Sequence record: NC_019929.1
DNA length: 64,000 bases
Direction: 5' to 3' (one strand)
The translations under genes were made by a program, and so were the position numbers. Below the pieces are notes generated by a model. The model did not search any database. It was given only the letters and a program-made list of their open reading frames with translations, and was not told where the DNA came from. This document shows positions 1 to 11,146 of the stretch, in pieces. Positions within the stretch are counted from its first letter, which is position 1. Each line of letters begins with the position of its first letter.

Positions 1-589
1 ATCTCGTCATTACTAAGCATTCAGATTCTCCTGCTAACCCGAGGTCCATCAGCAGGCCGAAGTCAACCATCTGGAAGTGTTCGGATAATTCCTCACCCCA
101 GATAAATTTCATCTTCTCTGCTAAGTCCCCGTTCTGTTCCTGGAAGATAAAGATTTGGTGCATTTCCTCACCAAACGAGTCGAACTGATGGTTAGAACGC
201 AGCGCGCGTACGCGCACACCGATCAAATCCGCAGCTTCCGGATTCTCCGGGTCGGCCCAGTTTAATGCCAGGCCAATCAGGTTATCGGTATCCAGGTTCT
301 GCGTAGAGCGACGCAGGATTTCGATTTTGTGGCGCGGGAATTCCGCAACACGCTGTTCGAAGCCCGGATTACGGATGGCCACCTGCTCCACAGAGTTGTG
401 TGTTTTCTCAACCCCGTCCAGCGGCAGAATGACGTTCAGTCCGAAGCGCACACACAGACGACGAATCTCATCAGTAAACGTGTCCGGTTCCACAATCGCG
501 TGGATGTTGTACATGCCGTGCTTTTGCATAAACGCGGCAACAAGGTGAAGATTACGCTTCGTAAAATTGTGTATCAGCAACGACTTCAT
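1..589 (-). CDS. Hypothetical protein, 3'-truncated by window edge; last visible gene of the radical SAM cluster
   Basis: Hand-translated, not in ORF track: MKSLLIHNFTKRNLHLVAAFMQKHGMYNIHAIVEPD... Open to position 1; GGAG upstream; overlaps the end of the SPASM gene. Confidence 0.75.
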   Translation of the reverse strand, partial: MKSLLIHNFTKRNLHLVAAFMQKHGMYNIHAIVEPDTFTDEIRRLCVRFGLNVILPLDGVEKTHNSVEQVAIRNPGFEQRVAEFPRHKIEILRRSTQNLDTDNLIGLALNWADPENPEAADLIGVRVRALRSNHQFDSFGEEMHQIFIFQEQNGDLAEKMKFIWGEELSEHFQMVDFGLLMDLGLAGESECLVMTR

Positions 590-1895
590 TCGCTGGTGCT
601 CCTAATTGGTTTTTCTTCTCGGCTGCTAATTTGCGATCGCGCACACAAGACACACAGTAGCACTGGGTCTTATCGTTCAGATCGGTATAACGGGTAGTAC
701 CGGTTTTCTGGTAGAAGTATTCTGCTACCAACAGTTTGGCGGTAGTCCAGCCACACTGACGACGCTCAGCGTGATACGCTTTACGGTCTTCCATTTCCCC
801 GTCACCGTTCTCGTATGATGCCGCGGCACAACTACCACACGCGTGCTTCATCGGACAACCCAGGCACGTTTCTGGATAGTTGGTGTACTGCGTTTGAATT
901 TCGTTCAACAGCTTATTGTCATCGATATTGACAATCTCACGGCCACGCAGTTCTGCGATAGCCTGACGTGTCGTTACCGTGGACATAAAGCGGTTACAGC
1001 CGTAAATCTTGCGGTCGAAGCCCAGGCAGGTCATGTGGGTTACGGTACCGCAGAACGGACGCACACGCTCCGGGTTCAGACGCGTTGCTTCGTCGTCCAG
1101 GAGCTTCTGACGCCAATCCGGGTCCCAGGTTGCCATGAAGTCCAGGCCATCCGGGAAGATGTGGGTCAGGCGGTTACGTGGGTCTTTCTCAAACCCTTTG
1201 TCGAACCAGTAGTCAATCACGTCCATCATCTGCAACGCAATCGACATTGCCATGGTGCGCGGCAGAATGTCTTCGTACGTGACGTTACCGGAAATGGTAC
1301 CGCCGCCGGTGACGTCCATCAGGTGCTTCATGGACTCGGCGTATTTCGGCAGGGTCTCAGAGGTAAAGGTGGCTTTGATACCCAGTTCCAGGATACCGAC
1401 CGATTTCAGGTAGTTGTAACCACGCATCGCTTTTTCGTACGACCCTTCACGGGTAGTCGTAAAGATACGATAACGGTCATGCACTTCCGGCAGACCATCG
1501 ATAGACACGCCGATGGACAGTTTGTCACGCCAGCGTTCGATAATCTCGCGGTTCAGCGGCTTGTCGAATAACGTGCCGTTCGTCGAGATGGAGAAGATAA
1601 CGTCACGGTTATCACGCTTCGCCAGTTCTTCGGCCGTTTCAAATACGGCTTTCAGAATCTTCGGCTGCATCATGGGTTCACCACCGATGATATCGATGAT
1701 AACTTCCACGTTCTTCAAATGACGGTCACGGTCGAAACACGCATGAATGAAGTCCACTGCATCATCGGCTTTATTGTTACGCGGGTATTTACGCTCGTAG
1801 CAATATTCACAGTCGAGGTTACAGGAGAGGTTGGTCACCACCTGATAGGTTTTGGTGATTTTGGGCTCTTGGGCCGGTGCTTTGGTATCACGCAT
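552..1895 (-). CDS. Radical SAM/SPASM-domain peptide maturase (CXXX-repeat-target type)
   Basis: CNLDCEYC (CxxxCxxC), GGEP, ISTNG, VSIDG; C-terminal Cys cluster FCG..TC..YGC..CLGC-x5-CGSC..QC typical of SPASM. Confidence 0.92.
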   Translation of the reverse strand: MRDTKAPAQEPKITKTYQVVTNLSCNLDCEYCYERKYPRNNKADDAVDFIHACFDRDRHLKNVEVIIDIIGGEPMMQPKILKAVFETAEELAKRDNRDVIFSISTNGTLFDKPLNREIIERWRDKLSIGVSIDGLPEVHDRYRIFTTTREGSYEKAMRGYNYLKSVGILELGIKATFTSETLPKYAESMKHLMDVTGGGTISGNVTYEDILPRTMAMSIALQMMDVIDYWFDKGFEKDPRNRLTHIFPDGLDFMATWDPDWRQKLLDDEATRLNPERVRPFCGTVTHMTCLGFDRKIYGCNRFMSTVTTRQAIAELRGREIVNIDDNKLLNEIQTQYTNYPETCLGCPMKHACGSCAAASYENGDGEMEDRKAYHAERRQCGWTTAKLLVAEYFYQKTGTTRYTDLNDKTQCYCVSCVRDRKLAAEKKNQLGAPANEVVADTQFYEA

Positions 1896-2793
1896 TGCGA
1901 TTTAACCCCGCTTGTATTACACGATTCATGTACTGGTAAGCGTCATAGCCAATGACTTCGGCCAGACGGTTACAGCCCGAGTTCAACACATCTATGGCAT
2001 TGTCAGACTGGTCAAACGTGGCATCGGATTTTACCCACACCAGATTGCTACAGTCGTCACAGTGCTGCCTGAAGAACTTGTTGATGCTGAGCGTTTGGTG
2101 GAAACCGTTCAGCGTGTTCAGCTCGGTCAACTGATCGTGCATTTTGTTGTACCCGTACATGAAGTTCATGACGAGATCCTGGTTAAGCGGCTTAGGCATG
2201 AAGTTATCAAACATCACACGGTAACCGTTTAAGCGGTAATGGTACAACGACTCGTGGAGTTTCAACAGGTCGTAGAACCAGTGCTTCGGTGCTAACTGGG
2301 CACGGGTAATCACCGACCATAACGTGATGTTGTCCAGCGCGTCAAACACCTCGAAAGCATCGTAGCGACGCTCCTCAGCGATACGCAGCAACGGACGTTC
2401 GGATTCTGCATAGCCGTCAAAGGAGACGAAGATGCGATCCATTTGCTCAAGCACCGGCAGCTGGGCCGGGGTCAGTCGCAGACCGTTGGTGTACATTTCA
2501 TGCTGTAGGTGCGGATAACGTTCCTTCAACTCAGCCATAAAGTCCTGGATTTTATTGAACGCCAACAGGGGTTCACCGCCCGTCCAGTTAATTTGCTGAA
2601 TAGTAGGATGCGCTTCCAGCGTTTCAAACAGCTTCTCTCTTTGGATGTCGCGCGCACTGTCTTTGACATCCATATACCCAACACCGCCACAGAAGCTACA
2701 ATCGAGATTGCACTTCGAGGTGGTGACAATCGACAGCTCCATCGGAGTTGACGAAGGGTCGCGACGAATAGCCGACACAGCTTCTTCACTCAT
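1888..2793 (-). CDS. Second radical SAM protein (short, incomplete SPASM)
   Basis: CNLDCSFC, TGGEPLL, YTNG, VSFDG; only CDDC plus one later Cys at the C-terminus. Confidence 0.88.
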   Translation of the reverse strand: MSEEAVSAIRRDPSSTPMELSIVTTSKCNLDCSFCGGVGYMDVKDSARDIQREKLFETLEAHPTIQQINWTGGEPLLAFNKIQDFMAELKERYPHLQHEMYTNGLRLTPAQLPVLEQMDRIFVSFDGYAESERPLLRIAEERRYDAFEVFDALDNITLWSVITRAQLAPKHWFYDLLKLHESLYHYRLNGYRVMFDNFMPKPLNQDLVMNFMYGYNKMHDQLTELNTLNGFHQTLSINKFFRQHCDDCSNLVWVKSDATFDQSDNAIDVLNSGCNRLAEVIGYDAYQYMNRVIQAGLNRNA

Positions 2794-2809
2794 TGCAGAT
2801 TTACTCCAG

Positions 2810-3697
2810 TTATTCGAAAGTCAGCTTGAACAGCGGGTCATCTTTGATGTCCACACCCGTCTTTAACACGAACGGGTCGTTATAAGCATCAAGGATCTGG
2901 TTCAGAATAGCCTGACGGTCATTCACACGCCGTAAGTCATCTAACGTGACCGTGCGAGCATGGAAGGCAGACACTGCGGTTTTCTCTTCAGCCGTCAGTT
3001 CTACTTTCGTCAGCAGGAACGCTACCAGTTTGTTCAGGTCTGCTTCGGTTGCAGGTGCTTCACCGAACTGCGTCTGCACCAGGTACTGCATCCACGGTTT
3101 GCGGATACGCTTGGTGATGTCGTGTTCGTCAAAGATTGCTTCGAATTGTTTCTCAGCCGGGTTCCAGACAAACTTGTAGCTGTAGGCCAGCAGGTCAAGC
3201 ATGTTGGTGATGCCGTGCTTTTCAAAGCCAACGATAGGGTAATACTCTTCGACACCGGTATACTGCTCAGTGTCTTGCGTTACCTGCGTAAACCAGCCAG
3301 GCATAGACCCCATGTAGTCCCAGCTCCATTCACGACGTGCCATTGGTTTCAGGCCACTTTCGCTAAACGGAATCAGGAACATTTCCAGGTCAACCACCTG
3401 GTTCAATACCGCATCGCTCAGGAAATATTTCCCATCCACTAAGCGACCTTTCACATCTTGCTCACCGGCCGTGATGTGAATGTGCTGCACGCTACGACCC
3501 GCTAACGTATAATCGGCTTCCACCGTATAGTTCTTCGGGTTAGCCAGCTCACGTCCACGAACCTTTGGCCACTCCCCTGGCAACTGACTGATCAGTCGCA
3601 CCTGGTCTAACAAGTGAAATTTCACACTGTCGTACAGGCTGATATGCAGTGGGAAGTTTTGCGTTGTCTTAAACGCAAGGTGTAGATCGTTCTTCAT
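2810..3697 (-). CDS. Hypothetical protein in radical SAM cluster (possible accessory/chaperone)
   Basis: 295-aa ORF tightly packed between the Cys-rich ORFs and the radical SAM genes; no motif recognised. Confidence 0.75.
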   Translation of the reverse strand: MKNDLHLAFKTTQNFPLHISLYDSVKFHLLDQVRLISQLPGEWPKVRGRELANPKNYTVEADYTLAGRSVQHIHITAGEQDVKGRLVDGKYFLSDAVLNQVVDLEMFLIPFSESGLKPMARREWSWDYMGSMPGWFTQVTQDTEQYTGVEEYYPIVGFEKHGITNMLDLLAYSYKFVWNPAEKQFEAIFDEHDITKRIRKPWMQYLVQTQFGEAPATEADLNKLVAFLLTKVELTAEEKTAVSAFHARTVTLDDLRRVNDRQAILNQILDAYNDPFVLKTGVDIKDDPLFKLTFE

Positions 3698-3707
3698 TTA
3701 AGTCCCC

Positions 3708-3914
3708 TTATCGGTTCCCCGCTCCGTGACTACAACCACCGCTACATGTCCAGCTACAAGACCCGCCGCAGTTATAGTGCGATAACGGTAACCCAGAAAG
3801 GTTGTTAGTCGTGCTAACCGTCCCCTGGGTTGCGATGAACGAGTTAGCGTCCGCCGTCTTGATATAGCCTTCCACTTGCACCATTTTGTCACGGATGTTT
3901 TTGAGTGAAATCAC
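3708..3914 (-). CDS. Short Cys-repeat precursor-like peptide C (68 aa, 4 Cys)
   Basis: GTG start with GGGGG upstream gives MISLKNIRD..., matching the two paralogs; core HYNCGGSCSWTCSGGCS. Confidence 0.85.
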   Translation of the reverse strand: MISLKNIRDKMVQVEGYIKTADANSFIATQGTVSTTNNLSGLPLSHYNCGGSCSWTCSGGCSHGAGNR

Positions 3915-3958
3915 ACTAACCCCCAAATTTGTAAAAAGTTAACTGGGAGACGAGGGCG

Positions 3959-4357
3959 TTACCGCGTTGGCCCGGAACAACCGGAACAACCAGAGCAGCT
4001 TGAGGAACATGAAGAAGAACAACCTGTTGAACACGTTCCTGAACAGCCGTTTGCACAGCCTCCTGAACATGCACCCGAACAGCCCGTACAGGTCGAAGAA
4101 CAACCCGAAGTACAGCTGGACGAACAACTTGCCCCACACGTTCCCGACGCAGAACCTGAGCACCCACCGGAACACGATGAACATGTCCAACTACAGGTAC
4201 CACCACAATCATAATGCGCACGCGGCTGGCCGCCAAACAACGTCGAGTTGTTCGTGGCTTTATTGCGAATATAGGTCTGCACCCCTGCCGCGTTTTTCAA
4301 TGCGGTATTATCAATACTATTCAGACGGTTCTGAATATCTTTTAGGTTGATAGCCAT
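3959..4357 (-). CDS. CXXX-repeat precursor-like peptide B (132 aa, 20 Cys)
   Basis: ATG at 4357 with GGAGACATC upstream; MAINLKDIQNRL leader; core HYDCGGTCSWTCS followed by Cys/Ser/Gly/Thr repeats. Confidence 0.9.
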   Translation of the reverse strand: MAINLKDIQNRLNSIDNTALKNAAGVQTYIRNKATNNSTLFGGQPRAHYDCGGTCSWTCSSCSGGCSGSASGTCGASCSSSCTSGCSSTCTGCSGACSGGCANGCSGTCSTGCSSSCSSSCSGCSGCSGPTR

Positions 4358-4368
4358 GATGTCTCCTA

Positions 4369-4752
4369 CTACGGCCCAGAGCAGCCAGAACAGCCTGTAC
4401 AGCTCGATGAGCACGACCCCGAGCACCCGCTACATTTACCGGAGCACCCGCCGGAGCAACTGCCTGAACAACCTGAGCAACCCGAACACCCGGTAGAACA
4501 ACCGCCCGTACAGCTGCCGGTACACGTCGATGTACACGTTCCCGAACAACTGGTACAACTTGCCGAACACCCGTTAGAGCACGACCAGCTACACGTACCA
4601 CCACAATCTAATTGACCCGGTGTCCAACCCGCAAAGCGCTCTTGCGCGTTATACGCTTGCGAGGCAACTTGCGCATCAACGCGAGGTCCGGTGGCGACAT
4701 TGGCTTCCACTATTTGCAGGCGGTCGCGTATGTTTTTAAGTGAGATTGCCAT
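4369..4752 (-). CDS. CXXX-repeat precursor-like peptide A (127 aa, 21 Cys)
   Basis: AAGGA upstream; MAISLKNIRDRL leader; core LDCGGTCSWSCS followed by Cys/Ser/Gly/Thr repeats. Confidence 0.9.
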   Translation of the reverse strand: MAISLKNIRDRLQIVEANVATGPRVDAQVASQAYNAQERFAGWTPGQLDCGGTCSWSCSNGCSASCTSCSGTCTSTCTGSCTGGCSTGCSGCSGCSGSCSGGCSGKCSGCSGSCSSSCTGCSGCSGP

Positions 4753-4769
4753 ACGTTTCCTTTAAGAAT

Positions 4770-4803
4770 AAAAAAGAGGACACTGCCATAAAGACAGGTC
4801 CTC
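4770..4803 (-). terminator. Intrinsic terminator between fibre genes and the Cys-repeat cluster
   Basis: Minus strand GAGGAC-CTGTC-TTTATG-GCAGT-GTCCTC then TTTTTT. Confidence 0.65.
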
Positions 4804-4818
4804 GTGTTTTTAAAAAGT

Positions 4819-6018
4819 TTAGCGTGTACCAGCTTCTGCTTGTACGTCGTCGCGAGTCGTGAGACTGTTGTTGACGTGAACCGCAGCTTGCACCACACCA
4901 CCGTACGTCTTGTGGAGGTAGTTCGGGTGTGGGTTGTCCGCTGCAACGTGGTTCGCCAGGTTCTGGTTTGCCTGCGAGATAGCGTTGGTATTGTTCGTGA
5001 TGCGAGTGTTCTGTGCGGTAATCTGGGCTTGCAGGTTATCAATCTTCTGTTGGAAGTCTTGACCTTGCGATTCCAAATCACCGACACGCTGCGTTAACGC
5101 GTTCAGGGCAGACTGCAAATCATTGACAGCTTTCTGCAATTGCAACACCAGGGAGTTGAGGTTCGCCAAGGCGAGCGACATCTTCTGGTAGTTCTGCGCC
5201 ACGGTGTTCAGCTGGTCATTCCATGCCACCAGAGATTGCACCACCGCATCGATACGGGCACCCAGTGCGGTATCGGCGGTTTTCAGTGAGGCAATTTCTT
5301 TTAAGGTGTCATCAATCTGCGTTTGAACCGCGGCAATCAGTGCACGAATCTCAGTTTCCGTCAGACCGTTGATCTGGTGAATATTGAGACTGTGGACGTT
5401 GCCTTGTGCATTAACGTGCGCATTCAACGCATCAAGGAAATCTTGTTTCAGACCGTCGATGATGCCTTTGATTTGTTCGAGCTGTACCGCCGACCCGGAG
5501 TTAATCGCGTCTTTGATGCCCGACAGTACCGTGATGATAAACTCGAACCCGTAGATATCACCCACGTCTTTAAACGTAGGTGCTGACGGGAACGTATCCG
5601 GTACGTTACGCAAGTCTTTGAAATCAACCGTACGGTCTTCCAATTTCAGCTCTGCAATCGCCTGAGTAATGGCAACAACGTTTGCTGACTGTGGACCGCC
5701 GATGACCTGAGCCGAGATAGTGATGTCGGTTGGAATAGCAGAGTTGGTGACCACCACCCCCATCAGGATTTCTTGGTTCTTGGTAAGCTTCTCGTACGCC
5801 GGGTGAGCGAAGATCAGCTCATAGTCCGTCCCACGTTTATAGAAGGTACCGGGTTTGTTCGTTGCAGCCAGACGAAACGACTCCGCGTAAAACGGCCCGT
5901 CTGGGAATGCAAAGGCCCGGTTAACCTTACCGGAACCTAACGTGACTCGCCGAGTGACAGCGTTCGACGTCAGTGTCCCCTTTAGGTCAAACGGGTACTG
6001 ATATACAATAGCGGCCAT
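4819..6018 (-). CDS. Virion fibre-family protein with C-terminal coiled coil (399 aa)
   Basis: ATG 6018 with AAGGAG; N-terminal YPFD..G..PFY domain shared with the three long fibres; heptad-rich C-terminal half. Confidence 0.75.
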   Translation of the reverse strand: MAAIVYQYPFDLKGTLTSNAVTRRVTLGSGKVNRAFAFPDGPFYAESFRLAATNKPGTFYKRGTDYELIFAHPAYEKLTKNQEILMGVVVTNSAIPTDITISAQVIGGPQSANVVAITQAIAELKLEDRTVDFKDLRNVPDTFPSAPTFKDVGDIYGFEFIITVLSGIKDAINSGSAVQLEQIKGIIDGLKQDFLDALNAHVNAQGNVHSLNIHQINGLTETEIRALIAAVQTQIDDTLKEIASLKTADTALGARIDAVVQSLVAWNDQLNTVAQNYQKMSLALANLNSLVLQLQKAVNDLQSALNALTQRVGDLESQGQDFQQKIDNLQAQITAQNTRITNNTNAISQANQNLANHVAADNPHPNYLHKTYGGVVQAAVHVNNSLTTRDDVQAEAGTR

Positions 6019-6061
6019 AGCCAAACTCCTTTGATTGGGGCGTCCGTGCCCCACAGCGCTG

Positions 6062-9000
6062 TTAAGACTTGAACATAAGATTGACCTGAATCTCGTCCAA
6101 GTCAACCAGCGAGTTACCTCCAGCGTATTCGCAGGCCACTGTCAGAGTCAGCGTTCCGGAATTGTAACTGGCAACAAACGGAGGGTTCAGAGCATCTTTC
6201 CCGGTGTTGAGTACCACCGCCGGTTCAGAAGGCAGATTCGGGATGACCAGCTCACGCGCTACCCGCACCACACCAAAGCTCGACGTCAAATCGCTCAATG
6301 CGTACAGCATGAACGGGGTATCAACATCAGTCTGACGGAACACGGTACCGGTAGTGGTGTCCACCACCTGTATCGCCAACATCTTTGTCTTCAGTGTTTG
6401 ATACTGCGCCGCAGTCAGTTCCGCAGACAAGGTGGCGACAAACTCCACCCCAGCTGGAAGACCCGAACCGGTGACGTTCACGAGGTCTGGGCCGGTGGCA
6501 AACAGTATCTCCGCAGCAGATGGATTCACCCCAGACGTCAGGCAATATTTGAACATCGGAATGCCGTTCGGTACCGCGTAACGCAGAGTAATCTGGCGGG
6601 CCGGATCACCAATATTCCCCGGCACCGTAAAGCGTAGCCTTGCCACAGCCACGTAGGTTTCCCCAGCGACATGTGGCACAGACTCAGCACCGATCCACTT
6701 CATGTTAAAACTGGCCGCGCGTGCGTTGTCTGCTGTTACAGCAGCCGTCTCAACCGGAGGTTTCAACCAAAAGCGTTCAGAGACATTCACCAGATCTTGC
6801 CAACGCGTGGCACCAAATCCGCTGTAGCGTTTCTGGATAGGCAGCGCAGGGCGGGTTTGGCGTGTAATCCCTTTGGACAGCTCTTGTCCATCGGCATACC
6901 CGGCCGTGCCCGAGCCCGGTGTCGCTAACGGCACTTTGCTCAATTGCGCCATTGACCCGATACGGGCTTCACGGGCAGCAGACACATCGTGACGGTTGGC
7001 GACCGCGGCGTGCTCTACCAACTGCTTGACGTTACCGAAACGTTTCACCTTATCAAACGTCGACAGGGTAATGCGTTCACTGTCCGTCACTACCGTACCG
7101 ATATACAGCTGGGTATCGCTGTCCGGTTCCTGTTGCTCCAGCAGACGGTATTGCGGAACACCGTTGACCAACGCAGCGTGCATGTAGAACGTGCGGTTCT
7201 GGTAGTTGGTTGGGTACAAGTCACGGATATCAGAACTGTATTCGCCCAACGTGTAGTACGCCGAACCGAATCGCAGTAACTCTTGTTCCGTGATGTACAA
7301 CGCCCACCCCTCCGCAGTCTTCGTACCGGCAAGGATGTTATCCTCAGGTGTCCCGGTACGGAAATTACGGACGGTGTTCTTGTAGACACTGGCGGCAAAG
7401 TACAACCCATTAAACAGCCATTTCGTCATCCCGATATAACCGGTCTCGGGCATCACCACAATGTCGACTTCATTCGAAGACGGGTTCATGGAAATGAGCG
7501 AGTTCGTCCAGCCCCCGAAAGTCGTATCACACGACAACAGGAAAGAACGCCAGCGACTGTCTCCAACCACCCCCATTCGGTACAACGCCCCCAGGAACAA
7601 CACATATCCATCGTCACGCTGAATCAACTTCGAGTTCGTGTACTGGTCGTGTGCCAAAGAGATACCGGCATCCGGGTCGCGATAGTTCTCGACAACCGGT
7701 GTCAACATCGTGGTACCCAACTGCACGTTCCCGTTGGTCACCGACATCGGTAGTTTCCACACCCAGGTAAAGGTGTGGGTTACCAGCCGACTGGTGTTGT
7801 CCCACATGCGCACAGAGGCCATGGCGAATGCCGCATTTAACCCACCGACATCAAACACTTGCAGCTTGGTTAATGTTTGCACGACTAACTCATCGTTCCA
7901 CACCGGCACCGCTGCCGCGATTGCGGCATTCAATGCAGCCCAAGTTGCATCTGTTACCGTGATACGATCTGCGGTAAAGGTGGACGTCCCAGTCACGGTC
8001 TTGTACGGGAAAGACCCTGCCTCGGTAATGACACGCCCGTTGATGTACAGCTGGCCATCTTTCCAGATATTCGGCGAAGACAGCAAGGTTCGGTAGTCAG
8101 GGTCGGTCACCGCGATACGCGCATTGTCTGGCCCCCAACCCGGATAGTCCGGGAAGTAGCGAGACGACTGGGTATAACGGAGCTGGATAACCTCTGCGGC
8201 CACATTGAGGTGTCGCATCAATACCGTGTTGGCAGTCCCACCGAGGTGGATAAGCCCACGCATGTATTGCTGATACACCGACCCTACTGCACCCCCCACG
8301 GTAGCGTTTGCGGTTTCGATAAGCGTTGTGCTGCTACCGAGTAAATCGTACAAACTCGTGTTCGGTGCAGGGCTGATACCGATACGTGGCGGGTTGTTTG
8401 AATAAACATCACAGAAGGAGTTCATCAACAAACCTGAGGACAGGAAGACCCTGTTCGTCAGCGCCACACCTTTGTTACGGTTGGTCACCGAGGGCAGAGG
8501 CTGGGCATTTGGGAACTCAATCTTGTTCTCGGTTAATGCGATCGGGAAGATTTTGTTCTCAAGCGTCAATAACCAGTTCTCCGTGTTAAGGGAGAGTGAT
8601 ACCGACCAGGCATCTGTCCACTGTGCTGAGGTATTATCGGAGAAGTACCCGTGCATCTCTGCACGCAACCGCACCATGTTCACCTGTGAGGCTGAATAAA
8701 ACGAAGGGAGGTAGTTAACCGCATTCCCGTTCGGCCAACGGGCTTTCCCCTCCGCGGTACGGTAGGCCAGGAACTTGGTTGTGGCATCATCGCCATAACC
8801 GCCTTCTTGTACAATCAGCGCCACGTCGCCGTCTTTGTCTGGGTAATTGAAATTAATTACCGGGATAGTCGAACTGTTTTTACTGCGCAGTTCGCTTAGA
8901 CTGATACTCCAACCGCCAACGGTAAAGCGGGTGTTGTTGACAATAGACATCAACACAACCACACGACCTTTGGTCACCGTCACTGTCGAATACTGACGAT

Positions 9001-11092
9001 AATCTTTAAAGGCGAGGGTACTGCCGTTCGACCGGACACAATCGGGCAATGTGATCTGGTACACGTCGTTGTGGGTCGCGTAGTTCATCGTCCCGTTGAA
9101 CAACACCAGATAGAACAGCCCATCGCTCGCCTCAAAGATAGCGGCGTCAGAATCCCCAACCACTACACGCGTCAATACCACACCAGGGAATTTACTCATC
9201 CCAGCTGGATGGTACGGGAACGTCGTGGGGTAGTTCTTCAGGAAATTATTAGACCCCCCAATAGACGCATACCAGTAATAGACCCGTCGGGTGTCTTCTG
9301 GCCCATCGCTGCCGTTACGCAGTACATAGACGTTACCGCCTTCGTAACGGGCAACCGCCCAGTTATTGGAACGGTCGTAGCCAAAGCCCGCGTAGTTACT
9401 GACGGTAGGAATAGGCAGGAAACTCGGGTTACCGTATTCCGCACCCCCGACTGTCCAGGATGGCAGTAAGGTGTTCACCTTCTCATTCAGCGACTTGATA
9501 GACTGGTCGATAGCGTACCCCTGTTTCGAGGTCACCATCTTATCATCGGTCGAGTCAATCGCATCCCACAGCTTCACCAGACCACTGACAGACGTTGACC
9601 CGTACGGGACGTTGTCCAAATCAGCGAGGGTATGCGTGTGGTCTGTTTTTGCCTTACTCGCCAATGCCGCAGTTAGTGCTTTGGTAACCGGCTTCTCTAA
9701 CGGGGCAGTGTTGTCCATTTTGTCGATACCGAAATCGGTTTTCGTCAAGGTCAACACTTGTTTCCCATCAGACCCTTTCACAAACTTCTTGCCGTTGATG
9801 CTGTAAGTGTCATCAACGTACAAGTCCAGTTTGTTTTTCAGGTCATTCACCGCTTTCTGCGAAATAGCAGCACCGGTGGCTACTGAGTTCGAGATATTGG
9901 TAATAGAGAACAGACCCGCCACCGCCGTCGTTGCGGTAGGCAGTTCCACGTTCATGTACACCCGGTTGGTGTCTTTCCCGCTACCGTAAATCTTGAGCGT
10001 ATCGCTCGATTTAAAGTAGGCGTTCGCCGGTAACAGTTTCACCGAGGTCAGATACATCCCGACCATCTCCGGCGTCACCAGATACACAGAGTTAAACACC
10101 GGGGCCAAGACATCGGCTGCTGCACCGGAGTGTACCCAGAGGGTATTCAGGCCCGCAGAGAACTCTACCCCGATGCCAGGGTCGTTGTTGTCCTGGTCAG
10201 CTTTCAAGACCAGCGGTTTCGGCGAGGTAATAATGAACTTCTCGCCCTTCATGCTGATCAGGTGACCTGCGGTGGTCTGGAAAGTAATCGCATCGTTGTT
10301 CAGAACACGCAGACGTCCCAGTAAATCCCCCAGGGTGTTATCCATCAGCAGGTCAACGTGGGCTTGTGAAATGCCCGAGGTGGACATCAACGTCACCAGC
10401 TCTGCCAAGGTACGGCCGAAGGCTTTCGTCGCGTCTACGGCCTTCCCAACGACCGGGAGCGCCCCTACGTCAGTGGTGGTGTAACCGTGGGCATTACTTT
10501 TCAGGTGGTGCTGGTACATCTCCTGCTCGAACACGGTGTTACCGTTCTGGTAAATCATGTCGGTCAGTTCAGTAAAGGCACCGTCCAGCTCACTGGCACG
10601 CTCGAGAATACCCAGACGAATATCTTCCAGCGCTTTCACCACTTCATCACGCAGAATCGCCTCATCCAGATTCTCTGGCGGGTCGATAGGTGAGATAACC
10701 GGGGCGTACTTCATTAACTCTGACCAATCCACGTTACGCGGATCGGGCAAGTCGGTTTTGACCAGGTACTTACCAATCTCTGACTGAGGTAGGCGATATT
10801 GACGCCCCACGGCCAGGAACTCGTAATCCACTTCGGAGGCAGTCAGTAGGATGAAGCCCCCGTAGATTTGGTCTTGCTCAGCTTCGGCCAGCTCTTTGAA
10901 ATAGTAACCGAGATAGTAATCCAGACCCTCAATCAGGGTGCGTTTACCGCCGGGTGCTGTTGCATCCTTAACGGTGAGTTTCAGACCAATACGGTAGAAA
11001 GGCCCTTCGGCAGGAATCACCGCATTGTATTTGTTCGGGTACGTTGCGGTCTTAAGCGTACCGTTAAACTGCGCCGCATCTTCTCTCGGCAT
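6062..11092 (-). CDS. Long tail-fibre-like protein (1676 aa)
   Basis: ATG 11092 with GGAG; shared N-terminal GPFY domain; fibre motifs ATTAVAGLFSI, LTKTDFGIDKMDNTAPLEKPV, DHTH; beta-rich distal part. Confidence 0.8.
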   Translation of the reverse strand: MPREDAAQFNGTLKTATYPNKYNAVIPAEGPFYRIGLKLTVKDATAPGGKRTLIEGLDYYLGYYFKELAEAEQDQIYGGFILLTASEVDYEFLAVGRQYRLPQSEIGKYLVKTDLPDPRNVDWSELMKYAPVISPIDPPENLDEAILRDEVVKALEDIRLGILERASELDGAFTELTDMIYQNGNTVFEQEMYQHHLKSNAHGYTTTDVGALPVVGKAVDATKAFGRTLAELVTLMSTSGISQAHVDLLMDNTLGDLLGRLRVLNNDAITFQTTAGHLISMKGEKFIITSPKPLVLKADQDNNDPGIGVEFSAGLNTLWVHSGAAADVLAPVFNSVYLVTPEMVGMYLTSVKLLPANAYFKSSDTLKIYGSGKDTNRVYMNVELPTATTAVAGLFSITNISNSVATGAAISQKAVNDLKNKLDLYVDDTYSINGKKFVKGSDGKQVLTLTKTDFGIDKMDNTAPLEKPVTKALTAALASKAKTDHTHTLADLDNVPYGSTSVSGLVKLWDAIDSTDDKMVTSKQGYAIDQSIKSLNEKVNTLLPSWTVGGAEYGNPSFLPIPTVSNYAGFGYDRSNNWAVARYEGGNVYVLRNGSDGPEDTRRVYYWYASIGGSNNFLKNYPTTFPYHPAGMSKFPGVVLTRVVVGDSDAAIFEASDGLFYLVLFNGTMNYATHNDVYQITLPDCVRSNGSTLAFKDYRQYSTVTVTKGRVVVLMSIVNNTRFTVGGWSISLSELRSKNSSTIPVINFNYPDKDGDVALIVQEGGYGDDATTKFLAYRTAEGKARWPNGNAVNYLPSFYSASQVNMVRLRAEMHGYFSDNTSAQWTDAWSVSLSLNTENWLLTLENKIFPIALTENKIEFPNAQPLPSVTNRNKGVALTNRVFLSSGLLMNSFCDVYSNNPPRIGISPAPNTSLYDLLGSSTTLIETANATVGGAVGSVYQQYMRGLIHLGGTANTVLMRHLNVAAEVIQLRYTQSSRYFPDYPGWGPDNARIAVTDPDYRTLLSSPNIWKDGQLYINGRVITEAGSFPYKTVTGTSTFTADRITVTDATWAALNAAIAAAVPVWNDELVVQTLTKLQVFDVGGLNAAFAMASVRMWDNTSRLVTHTFTWVWKLPMSVTNGNVQLGTTMLTPVVENYRDPDAGISLAHDQYTNSKLIQRDDGYVLFLGALYRMGVVGDSRWRSFLLSCDTTFGGWTNSLISMNPSSNEVDIVVMPETGYIGMTKWLFNGLYFAASVYKNTVRNFRTGTPEDNILAGTKTAEGWALYITEQELLRFGSAYYTLGEYSSDIRDLYPTNYQNRTFYMHAALVNGVPQYRLLEQQEPDSDTQLYIGTVVTDSERITLSTFDKVKRFGNVKQLVEHAAVANRHDVSAAREARIGSMAQLSKVPLATPGSGTAGYADGQELSKGITRQTRPALPIQKRYSGFGATRWQDLVNVSERFWLKPPVETAAVTADNARAASFNMKWIGAESVPHVAGETYVAVARLRFTVPGNIGDPARQITLRYAVPNGIPMFKYCLTSGVNPSAAEILFATGPDLVNVTGSGLPAGVEFVATLSAELTAAQYQTLKTKMLAIQVVDTTTGTVFRQTDVDTPFMLYALSDLTSSFGVVRVARELVIPNLPSEPAVVLNTGKDALNPPFVASYNSGTLTLTVACEYAGGNSLVDLDEIQVNLMFKS

Positions 11093-11111
11093 TGCAAAGA
11101 CTCCTACTTTG

Positions 11112-11146
11112 AAATAAAACGGATACCCCACCCCGGAGGGTGGGGT
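11112..11146 (-). terminator. Intrinsic terminator
   Basis: CCCCACCC-TCCG-GGGTGGGG stem-loop followed by a T-rich tract on the minus strand. Confidence 0.65.

Follow-up and report, generated by a model that had tools for sequence, protein, structure and literature searches.

The genes considered here lie at the start of a 64,000-nucleotide stretch of sequence record NC_019929.1 (the window, below), where three cysteine-rich peptides, two radical S-adenosylmethionine (SAM) enzymes and two further proteins are encoded on the minus strand, directly downstream of candidate tail-fibre genes. Bases 1-6200 of the window match positions 62001-68200 of NC_019929, Erwinia phage phiEaH2, at 100% identity. 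This phage, a jumbo myovirus with a genome of 243 kb, belongs to the SPN3US-like group (genus Erskinevirus). An earlier note, made from the sequence alone, had described seven minus-strand open reading frames, among them peptides A, B and C with 21, 20 and 4 cysteines and two radical SAM proteins, and all of them were present where it had placed them. We refer to the peptide genes as pepA, pepB and pepC and to the enzymes as rSAM1 and rSAM2. In the direction in which they are read, the genes of the module are:

4369..4752, minus strand: pepA, 127 residues with 21 cysteines; open reading frame absent from the deposited record; phrog_6085, E-value 1e-48
3959..4357, minus strand: pepB, 132 residues with 20 cysteines, from an ATG; paralogue with a layout like that of pepA; phrog_6085, E-value 1e-53
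3708..3914, minus strand: pepC, 68 residues with 4 cysteines, from a GTG; the deposited gp086; phrog_6085, E-value 7e-27
2810..3697, minus strand: gp085, partner protein of 295 residues; phrog_8030; specific for the module
1888..2793, minus strand: rSAM2 (gp084), radical SAM protein of 301 residues; PF04055
552..1895, minus strand: rSAM1 (gp083), radical SAM/SPASM protein of 447 residues; PF04055 and TIGR04085
1..589, minus strand: gp082, 196 residues; phrog_7988; its stop codon straddles the start of the window

The genes are separated by spacers of 10-44 nucleotides or else overlap by 8-38 nucleotides, the longest overlap being that of gp082 with the end of rSAM1. Mechanically called open reading frames extend to a GTG at 4426 for pepB and begin with a TTG at 3926 for pepC. 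Shine-Dalgarno-like motifs are found 5-6 nucleotides 5' of the peptide starts (AAGGAAA for pepA, TAGGAGA and TGGGGG for the others).

Cysteine-repeat peptides and their reading frames

The cysteine-rich frames are the coding frames, and they are under purifying selection. In comparisons with phages Asesino, Caitlin, Huxley and SPAsTU, which represent four other genera, the ratio of nonsynonymous to synonymous substitution rates (dN/dS) was 0.02-0.10 overall (0.05-0.10 for pepA, 0.02-0.06 for pepB and 0.03-0.06 for pepC). Differences from Asesino were distributed 4/4/40 over codon positions 1/2/3 of the cysteine frame in pepA and 3/7/64 in pepB, placing 40 of 48 and 64 of 74 at the third position. 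Cysteine accounts for about 27% of the pepA core, compared with 1.1% of the long open reading frames of the window, and the cysteine pattern is far beyond chance. The number of cysteines in pepA was 21 in all 18 related jumbo-phage loci. Across the same loci pepB has 20 cysteines, or 21-23 in Derbicusvirus and Wellingtonvirus, and pepC, which was found in every one of them, has 4, or 2-3 in these two genera. All three peptides matched a single phage family of unassigned function, phrog_6085.

Deposited annotations frequently call other frames. In the phiEaH2 record, gp087 (3939-4184) and gp088 (4436-4570), both on the minus strand, are out-of-frame readings over pepB and pepA, and SPN3US_0166 (4425-4760 of locus L011) is likewise an out-of-frame reading over these two genes. 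Several reference annotations of SPN3US-like phages lack pepA and pepB and contain differing spurious open reading frames in the interval. Because the reference annotations of a whole group of jumbo phages omit two conserved genes or call them in the wrong frame, published virion proteomes are blind to their products.

The N-terminal part of the peptides, about 49 residues long (MAISLKNIRDRLQ..), is ordinary sequence, in which a helix is weakly predicted for residues 5-19 of pepA. It leads into a junction common to all three peptides, ..N-x-x-x-(L/F)-x-G-x5-(Y/L)-x-C-(G/N)-G-(S/T)-C-S-(W/F)-(S/T)-C-S. In pepA the junction takes the form D-C-G-G-T-C-S-W-S-C-S and is followed by C-(S/T)-x-(x) repeats, with successive cysteines spaced by 4 residues (14 times) or by 3. 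The tails of pepA and pepB consist almost entirely of cysteine, serine, glycine and threonine and terminate in CSGCSGP; the residue after cysteine is serine or threonine at 20 of 21 positions in pepA and 17 of 20 in pepB. Past the junction, the cores of both peptides have no aspartate or glutamate and almost no lysine or arginine, and hence hardly any tryptic sites. The short pepC has the shared N-terminal segment and the junction (C-G-G-S-C-S-W-T-C-S), and no repeat tail.

No long tandem repeat was detected in the DNA of the peptide genes, where repeats were trivial. The periodicity is therefore maintained at the protein level. A recent expansion of a DNA tandem repeat was considered as the origin of the repeats and rejected on the same grounds. 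Among curated models of modification targets, TIGR04114 came close to its cut-off of 20 bits with pepB (18.5 bits); pepA and pepC did not match it, and pepA matched no curated target model.

Radical SAM enzymes and the partner protein

Both enzymes belong to the radical SAM superfamily, with scores of 54.9 bits (rSAM1) and 52.6 bits (rSAM2) against the PF04055 cut-off of 29.5, and the CX3CX2C motif is invariant in the alignments of both (A2 for rSAM1 and A6 for rSAM2). In rSAM1, this cluster motif is formed by C25, C29 and C32. Alignment A2, which includes relatives down to 33% identity, also contains eight invariant C-terminal cysteines of rSAM1 (C282, C290, C300, C344, C347, C353, C356 and C381), a set that includes a CX2CX5CX2C arrangement; SPASM domains characteristically have about seven conserved cysteines, which serve two auxiliary 4Fe-4S clusters. 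The C-terminus matched the SPASM model TIGR04085 with 33.6 bits (cut-off 27, E-value 4e-8), in agreement with the SPASM assignment in the earlier note; the Pfam SPASM model (PF13186) did not match rSAM1.

The best curated model for rSAM1 was that of PapB (NF047865), with 133.4 bits against a cut-off of 340. On TIGR04115, the model of the CXXX-repeat maturases, rSAM1 scored 121.2 bits against a cut-off of 350, aligned over profile positions 5-345 of 359. In a phylogenetic tree, the SPASM enzymes of the module and the true TIGR04115 proteins formed separate clades (support 100/100), and judged by sequence the rSAM1 clade is the sister of the CXXX-repeat maturases and PapB. The suggestion that enzyme and peptides relate to TIGR04115 and TIGR04114 was therefore right as to relationship, given the end-to-end alignment and the near match of pepB, but membership does not follow from 121 bits against 350. 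The nearest solved structure by sequence is that of CteB (5wgg, E-value 9e-14). Taken together, these affinities suggest that rSAM1 is probably a thioether-forming maturase.

The shorter enzyme, rSAM2, carries GGEPLL in addition to CX3CX2C and had no SPASM match with either TIGR04085 or Pfam. Three near-invariant C-terminal cysteines in alignment A6 (C245, C248 and C274) are probably the ligands of one auxiliary cluster. None of the NCBIfam models matched rSAM2 at its cut-off; the best were the tungsten-cofactor maturase, PapB and HxsC, each at about 40 bits. The idea that rSAM2 is a truncated recent copy of rSAM1 was rejected, the two sharing just 23% identity (E-value 6e-4). In the annotations of SPN3US (gp164, 6030-6824 of locus L006) and of CR5 (CR5_154, 6022-6801 of locus L007), the short radical SAM gene starts downstream of the CX3CX2C motif; both genes probably extend further in the 5' direction, as they do in the SPAsTU and phiEaH2 annotations.

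The partner protein gp085 was modelled by AlphaFold2 with good confidence (predicted local distance difference test score, pLDDT, 87.8; predicted template modelling score, pTM, 0.83). The model predicts an N-terminal beta-sheet domain and a C-terminal helical domain. A Foldseek search with it returned nothing in the PDB (best E-value 0.11) and only the protein's own orthologue in BFVD. The wider family has no conserved cysteine or histidine motif, G212 and D220 being its sole invariant residues. The protein was present in 62 phage records, all of them SPN3US-like, and related proteins co-occur with a cysteine-repeat protein and both radical SAM enzymes in distant phages and prophages. When 1.84 billion proteins were searched with a gp085-like profile, 100 cluster representatives were found, and the family is therefore rare yet diversified. 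We infer that gp085 is probably a substrate-recognition or scaffold component. The last protein, gp082, matched no Pfam or NCBIfam family and occurred only in the jumbo-phage clade and in locus L012; it is therefore an accessory and not part of the core.

Association with tail-fibre genes

A survey of synteny across jumbo phages, as proposed in the earlier note, revealed the same gene order, gp089-pepA-pepB-pepC-gp085-rSAM2-rSAM1-gp082-gp081, in 18 of 18 loci from five genera. In all of them the module is directly downstream of homologues of SPN3US gp167-170, which are candidate tail or baseplate-fibre proteins of the virion. The neighbouring features in phiEaH2 are:

4769..4812, minus strand: terminator-like hairpin with a U-tract, downstream of the gp089 stop codon and upstream of the start of pepA
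4819..6018, minus strand: gp089, structural protein of the virion with a coiled coil; homologous to SPN3US gp167; pepA follows immediately downstream
6062..11131, minus strand: gp090, 1689 residues; homologous to SPN3US gp168, which is related to phiKZ gp131 and is a candidate for the baseplate periphery or a tail fibre
5353-6021 of locus L001, just outside the window, minus strand: gp081, final gene of the conserved jumbo block, DUF4376 (E-value 5e-9), homologue of SPN3US gp161

Purified SPN3US virions contained gp167-173, none of which is a head protein; gp167, the homologue of gp089, was likewise not assigned to the head. The authors of that work list gp168-170 as baseplate or tail-fibre candidates (PMC5694885 Table 1), and gp168 resembles phiKZ gp131, which is located at the baseplate periphery (PMC5105663).

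The hairpin between gp089 and pepA has a folding energy of -18.7 kcal/mol (z = -6.1) and is kept in five phages. In SPAsTU both of its arms are altered and complementarity is retained. It may act as an intrinsic terminator or attenuator dividing the fibre gene from the modification genes. A scan for sigma-70 promoters and terminators gave counts not above those of shuffled sequence, and this hairpin was the only element upheld by folding and comparison.

The module is not peculiar to one jumbo phage but is portable, occurring where widely differing phages and prophages encode their tail fibres. Its core has four parts: a cysteine-repeat domain, a gp085-like protein, a short radical SAM enzyme and a SPASM radical SAM enzyme. 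This core is found again in phages like T7 and lambda, in phages of other kinds and in prophages. Outside the jumbo phages, the cysteine-repeat domain in most cases forms the C-terminus of a tail-fibre-like protein or is encoded 3' of a tail-fibre gene. A search with pepB identified proteins of 119-226 residues that end in the junction and the repeat domain and have longer N-termini; in their contigs the cysteine protein is followed by two radical SAM genes, usually together with a gp085-like gene. Relatives of the peptides carry weak or faint precomputed matches to PF27846 ('tSAM_targ_Cxxx_rpt'). A profile search with an alignment of the cysteine domain itself was swamped by low-complexity candidates and added little.

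Scans with the rSAM1 alignment yielded 37 viral and 15 genomic loci. Relatives of rSAM1 at 34-38% identity were flanked by gp085-like and rSAM2-like genes and by genes for proteins of 256-600 residues that end in the cysteine domain. The fused proteins matched phrog_6085 with their C-terminal end and tail-fibre PHROGs with their N-terminal part, the latter matches being strong in L036 (phrog_11011, 1.8e-10) and L040, moderate in P0052 and L035, and weak in L055 and L059. More generally, the N-terminal parts of the longer relatives gave tail-fibre PHROG matches or consisted of collagen-like repeats, coiled coils or HxH fibre repeats.

The genomic surroundings were in keeping with this picture. 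In the T7-like contigs L013-L016 the cysteine protein is encoded 3' of a collagen-repeat tail fibre (of T7 type in L013). In L038 it comes after a lambda J-like central fibre (E-value 3e-143), and in L036 after tail-collar, fibre and tail-fibre-assembly genes. Genomes of Desulfoluna, Thalassospiraceae and Synergistaceae encode cysteine-domain proteins after prophage tail genes, and in the prophage loci L055, L056 and L058 the module is beside tail genes. Across phages, the module was thus found in or adjacent to tail-fibre or baseplate genes, with L012 as the exception. This locus contains the A/B/C trio, gp085, rSAM2, rSAM1 and gp082. About 200 bp upstream of its peptide trio is a gene for a 73-residue protein of the Acb2/Tad1-hairpin family (9220-9441, precomputed Pfam match), a family of anti-defence nucleotide sponges. 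In L056, the start codon of a cysteine-repeat peptide of about 75 residues (ATG, gene at about 4012-4245) overlaps the stop of a 577-residue tail-fibre gene (2285-4018), which suggests translational coupling of fibre and peptide.

Natural rearrangements tie the enzymes to the peptides. In L059, from a bacterial genome bin, one open reading frame (5089-7119) matches both the rSAM2 and the rSAM1 profile and is a natural fusion; it adjoins a gene for a 257-residue fibre-like protein with cysteine repeats. Two IMG/VR jumbo-phage contigs, L026 (2542-3453) and L033 (about 2531-3454), have an rSAM2 paralogue of 303 residues between pepA and pepB, additional to the usual rSAM2. Two rSAM2-like genes are also present in L055, the Desulfoluna prophage.

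More distant radical SAM proteins, at 25-27% identity in L041-L046, are true TIGR04115 members (372-401 bits), and their targets pass TIGR04114. These viral loci have a single radical SAM gene and follow a Phage_tail_fib gene, and their targets have N-terminal repeats and a C-terminal globular domain. Two further observations concern other radical SAM loci. A 188-residue protein with HYH and HTH motifs (5435-6001 of L051 and L066, an Omnitrophota bin and an identical viral contig) ends in CCECECTCTCTCECTCACTCTCECRC, with cysteine at every second residue, and is encoded directly 5' of a PapB-like radical SAM protein (171 bits). A Candidatus Sulfotelmatobacter contig (L064, 231-6952) contains five consecutive radical SAM genes with weak matches to the rSAM1 profile.

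Proposed role and relation to known systems

The occurrence of the gene set beside, or fused to, tail-fibre genes in many unrelated phages suggests that phages probably cross-link part of their host-attachment fibres, with chemistry of the kind used in making peptide antibiotics. We therefore favour, with a probability of roughly 0.55, the reading that the module cross-links a tail-fibre tip or accessory and does not make a secreted peptide. The peptides would be the substrates of the enzymes, the cross-links would be thioethers, and the products would be present in the virion. For the jumbo phages, the balance tilts slightly towards the peptides being detached segments of the fibre tip. Full-text literature searches returned no paper on this system.

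The proposed sequence of events is as follows. pepA, pepB and pepC would be translated late, beside baseplate and fibre genes. Their shared N-terminal part, a short helix followed by the '...N-x-x-x-(L/F)-x-G...Y-x-C-x-G-x-C-S-W' junction, would match the last segment of the tail-fibre shaft in other phages and would serve in docking or trimerisation, not as a cleaved leader. The cysteine-repeat tail would be presented to both radical SAM enzymes by gp085. From the regularly spaced cysteines rSAM1 would form thioether bridges, linking sulfur to carbon within a chain or possibly between chains, and rSAM2, with its one putative auxiliary-cluster site, would introduce a second type of modification or act on a subset of sites. 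The product would be a stiff rod or knot, resistant to reduction and proteases and made in the reducing cytoplasm, where disulfides cannot form. It would decorate the fibres formed by gp089 and gp090-092 or make up their distal part.

A wider formulation, for which we see slightly less than an even chance, is that a portable four-gene module of many unrelated tailed phages, by means of two radical SAM enzymes and a partner of novel fold, installs a ladder of thioether or other radical cross-links in a cysteine-repeat domain. This domain would form the distal end of the fibre and, in the jumbo phages, would be a separate A/B/C trio, possibly a heterotrimer. The heterotrimer is speculation suggested by the recurrence of three paralogues in the window, in L012, in L017, where three cysteine proteins are encoded in tandem, and in L045.

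Several results weigh against cross-linking of the fibre tip. Between the cysteines, the repeats have only serine, glycine and threonine and thus no aspartate or glutamate acceptor of the PapB type; the acceptor residue must therefore differ from that of PapB. The top model matches of rSAM2 are a blend of cofactor and peptide enzymes. AlphaFold2 gave no fold for pepA with an alignment of 27 sequences (pLDDT 42.8, pTM 0.17), and the model, which shows just the N-terminal helix, says nothing on the fold of the repeats. The three peptides matched phrog_6085 only and have no recognisable fibre domain in themselves. The module of L012 is not beside recognisable tail genes, and the peptides of about 75 residues in Thalassospiraceae prophages have a short N-terminal part, as in ordinary precursors of ribosomally synthesized and post-translationally modified peptides (RiPPs). 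Finally, SPN3US gp161-166 are not listed in the virion proteomics of that phage. For the enzymes and helpers this fits a non-virion role, and the peptides would not have been identifiable, because pepA and pepC are unannotated, gp166 is out of frame and the core has hardly any tryptic sites.

It is unlikely, in our view, that the module makes a diffusible RiPP, the 50 N-terminal residues being a leader removed by a host protease and the modified core being freed at lysis to act against bacterial competitors or the host or to serve as a signal. Such a product would agree with short precursors that combine a conserved N-terminal part and a repetitive core, with the several paralogues, with maturases of the RiPP type and with the short Thalassospiraceae peptides. 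However, family scans found no protease, transporter or RiPP recognition element (PqqD-like) family in any protein of the module, so that the absence of a transporter and a protease already noticed in the window was borne out and a RiPP cluster in the usual sense is not present; nor does the module have an immunity gene. The same domain is C-terminal on tail-fibre-like proteins of 200-600 residues in many phages, and the module sits within tail-fibre loci. Furthermore, the cysteine count is strictly kept, and the spacers are of low complexity (serine, glycine and threonine), not those of a diversified bioactive core. On the tail-fibre reading, the label 'RiPP-like' would fit the chemistry but not the product.

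The C-terminal position in fibre proteins would also be expected if the cross-linked cysteine domain were needed for assembly only, as a clamp for fibre trimerisation or a chaperone absent from the mature particle, in the manner of C-terminal intramolecular chaperone domains or tail-fibre assembly proteins. Neighbouring genes include the DUF4376 gene gp081 and tail-fibre assembly genes, and gp161-166 were not seen in SPN3US virions. We nevertheless consider this distinctly unlikely: no peptidase domain of the self-cleaving kind was found, it would be costly for two enzymes to modify about 20 sites covalently in a part that is discarded, and absence from a proteome is uninformative for the peptides.

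A third possibility, which we regard as improbable, is that the peptides remain unmodified and bind metal or iron-sulfur clusters as a metallothionein-like cysteine polymer, the radical SAM enzymes acting on a cofactor, nucleotide or sugar. The very high cysteine content and regular spacing speak for it, and so do the top models of rSAM2, which include MoaA, viperin and the tungsten-cofactor maturase at about 40 bits. However, the families nearest to rSAM1 are all peptide maturases with cysteine-rich targets, the enzymes and cysteine proteins are strictly adjacent across very different genomes, with fusions and duplications, and nothing else in the module points to a small-molecule pathway. 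That the cysteine frames are chance readings of GC-rich repetitive DNA and the annotated gp087 and gp088 are real, as the frames called in the phiEaH2, SPN3US and other deposited annotations would have it, is refuted by dN/dS values of 0.02-0.10, by the 83-86% of substitutions at third positions of the cysteine frame, by the number and positions of cysteines kept in five genera, by the phrog_6085 matches and by the Shine-Dalgarno motifs.

The earlier note had left three fates open for the product. Comparative evidence favours the modified virion component among them, and a metal-binding polymer or a host-acting effector is less favoured. Radical SAM/SPASM maturases are familiar from the synthesis of small secreted peptides, and cross-linking of fibre tips, if true, would extend their chemistry to structural virology, in the apparatus by which phages with all types of tail recognise the host. 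Enzymes would thereby be shown for the first time to install radical cross-links in a structural protein of the virion, a new kind of virion maturation beside proteolysis, autocatalytic isopeptide bonds and glycosylation. It would also account for the two 'radical SAM' genes of SPN3US-like genomes and suggest a biological role for the orphan CXXX-repeat families TIGR04114 and TIGR04115. Amber mutants of SPN3US exist, so that the idea is open to genetic tests in this phage. Fibre tips that are cross-linked and withstand reduction could be of use in engineering robust phage particles or peptide scaffolds.

Among known systems, the closest parallels involve other cysteine-rich targets. The CXXX families were reportedly defined by Haft and Basu in 2011, and to our knowledge the TIGR04115/TIGR04114 system has been defined bioinformatically and not characterised biochemically. 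In that system, which also includes PF27846, a SPASM radical SAM enzyme likewise adjoins proteins with long runs in which every third or fourth residue is cysteine. The phage module differs by its second radical SAM enzyme, its gp085-like partner and the C-x-G-x-C-S-W junction, and rSAM1, at 121.2 bits against 350, is not a TIGR04115 protein.

PapB, a ranthipeptide maturase, joins the cysteine sulfur of PapA (freyrasin) to the beta or gamma carbon of aspartate or glutamate in C-X3-D/E motifs. The resemblance to PapB lies in a compact SPASM maturase with no long N-terminal recognition domain and in a substrate with a periodic cysteine motif. In contrast, PapA is a short precursor of the secreted type and is not linked to fibres; the peptide cores have no C-X3-D/E motif, and the rSAM1 score (133.4 against 340 bits) places it outside the PapB family. 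CteB, the SCIFF thioether maturase (5WGG), has a comparable radical SAM core and a SPASM region with two auxiliary clusters. The alignment begins at CteB residue 103, and rSAM1 is thus without the N-terminal peptide-recognition extension of CteB, a role that, by analogy, gp085 may fill as a separate protein.

The His-Xaa-Ser system, HxsB/HxsC with HxsA and HxsD, shares a target with short-period repeats, a long SPASM and a short non-SPASM radical SAM enzyme, and an additional family-specific protein. Its repeat residue is different, however, there are no HXS repeats in the phage peptides, and it has no link to phages or fibres. Scores of 87 bits against 370 (rSAM1 on HxsB, TIGR03978) and 40 bits against 268 (rSAM2 on HxsC, TIGR03977) place the phage enzymes outside this paired system, and the likeness is one of analogy only. 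In the capsid 'chainmail' of HK97, isopeptide bonds form autocatalytically between the capsid subunits. Post-translational covalent stabilisation of a phage structural protein would be common to both cases, whereas the cross-links proposed for the module would be the work of dedicated radical SAM enzymes on a cysteine-repeat domain associated with fibres.

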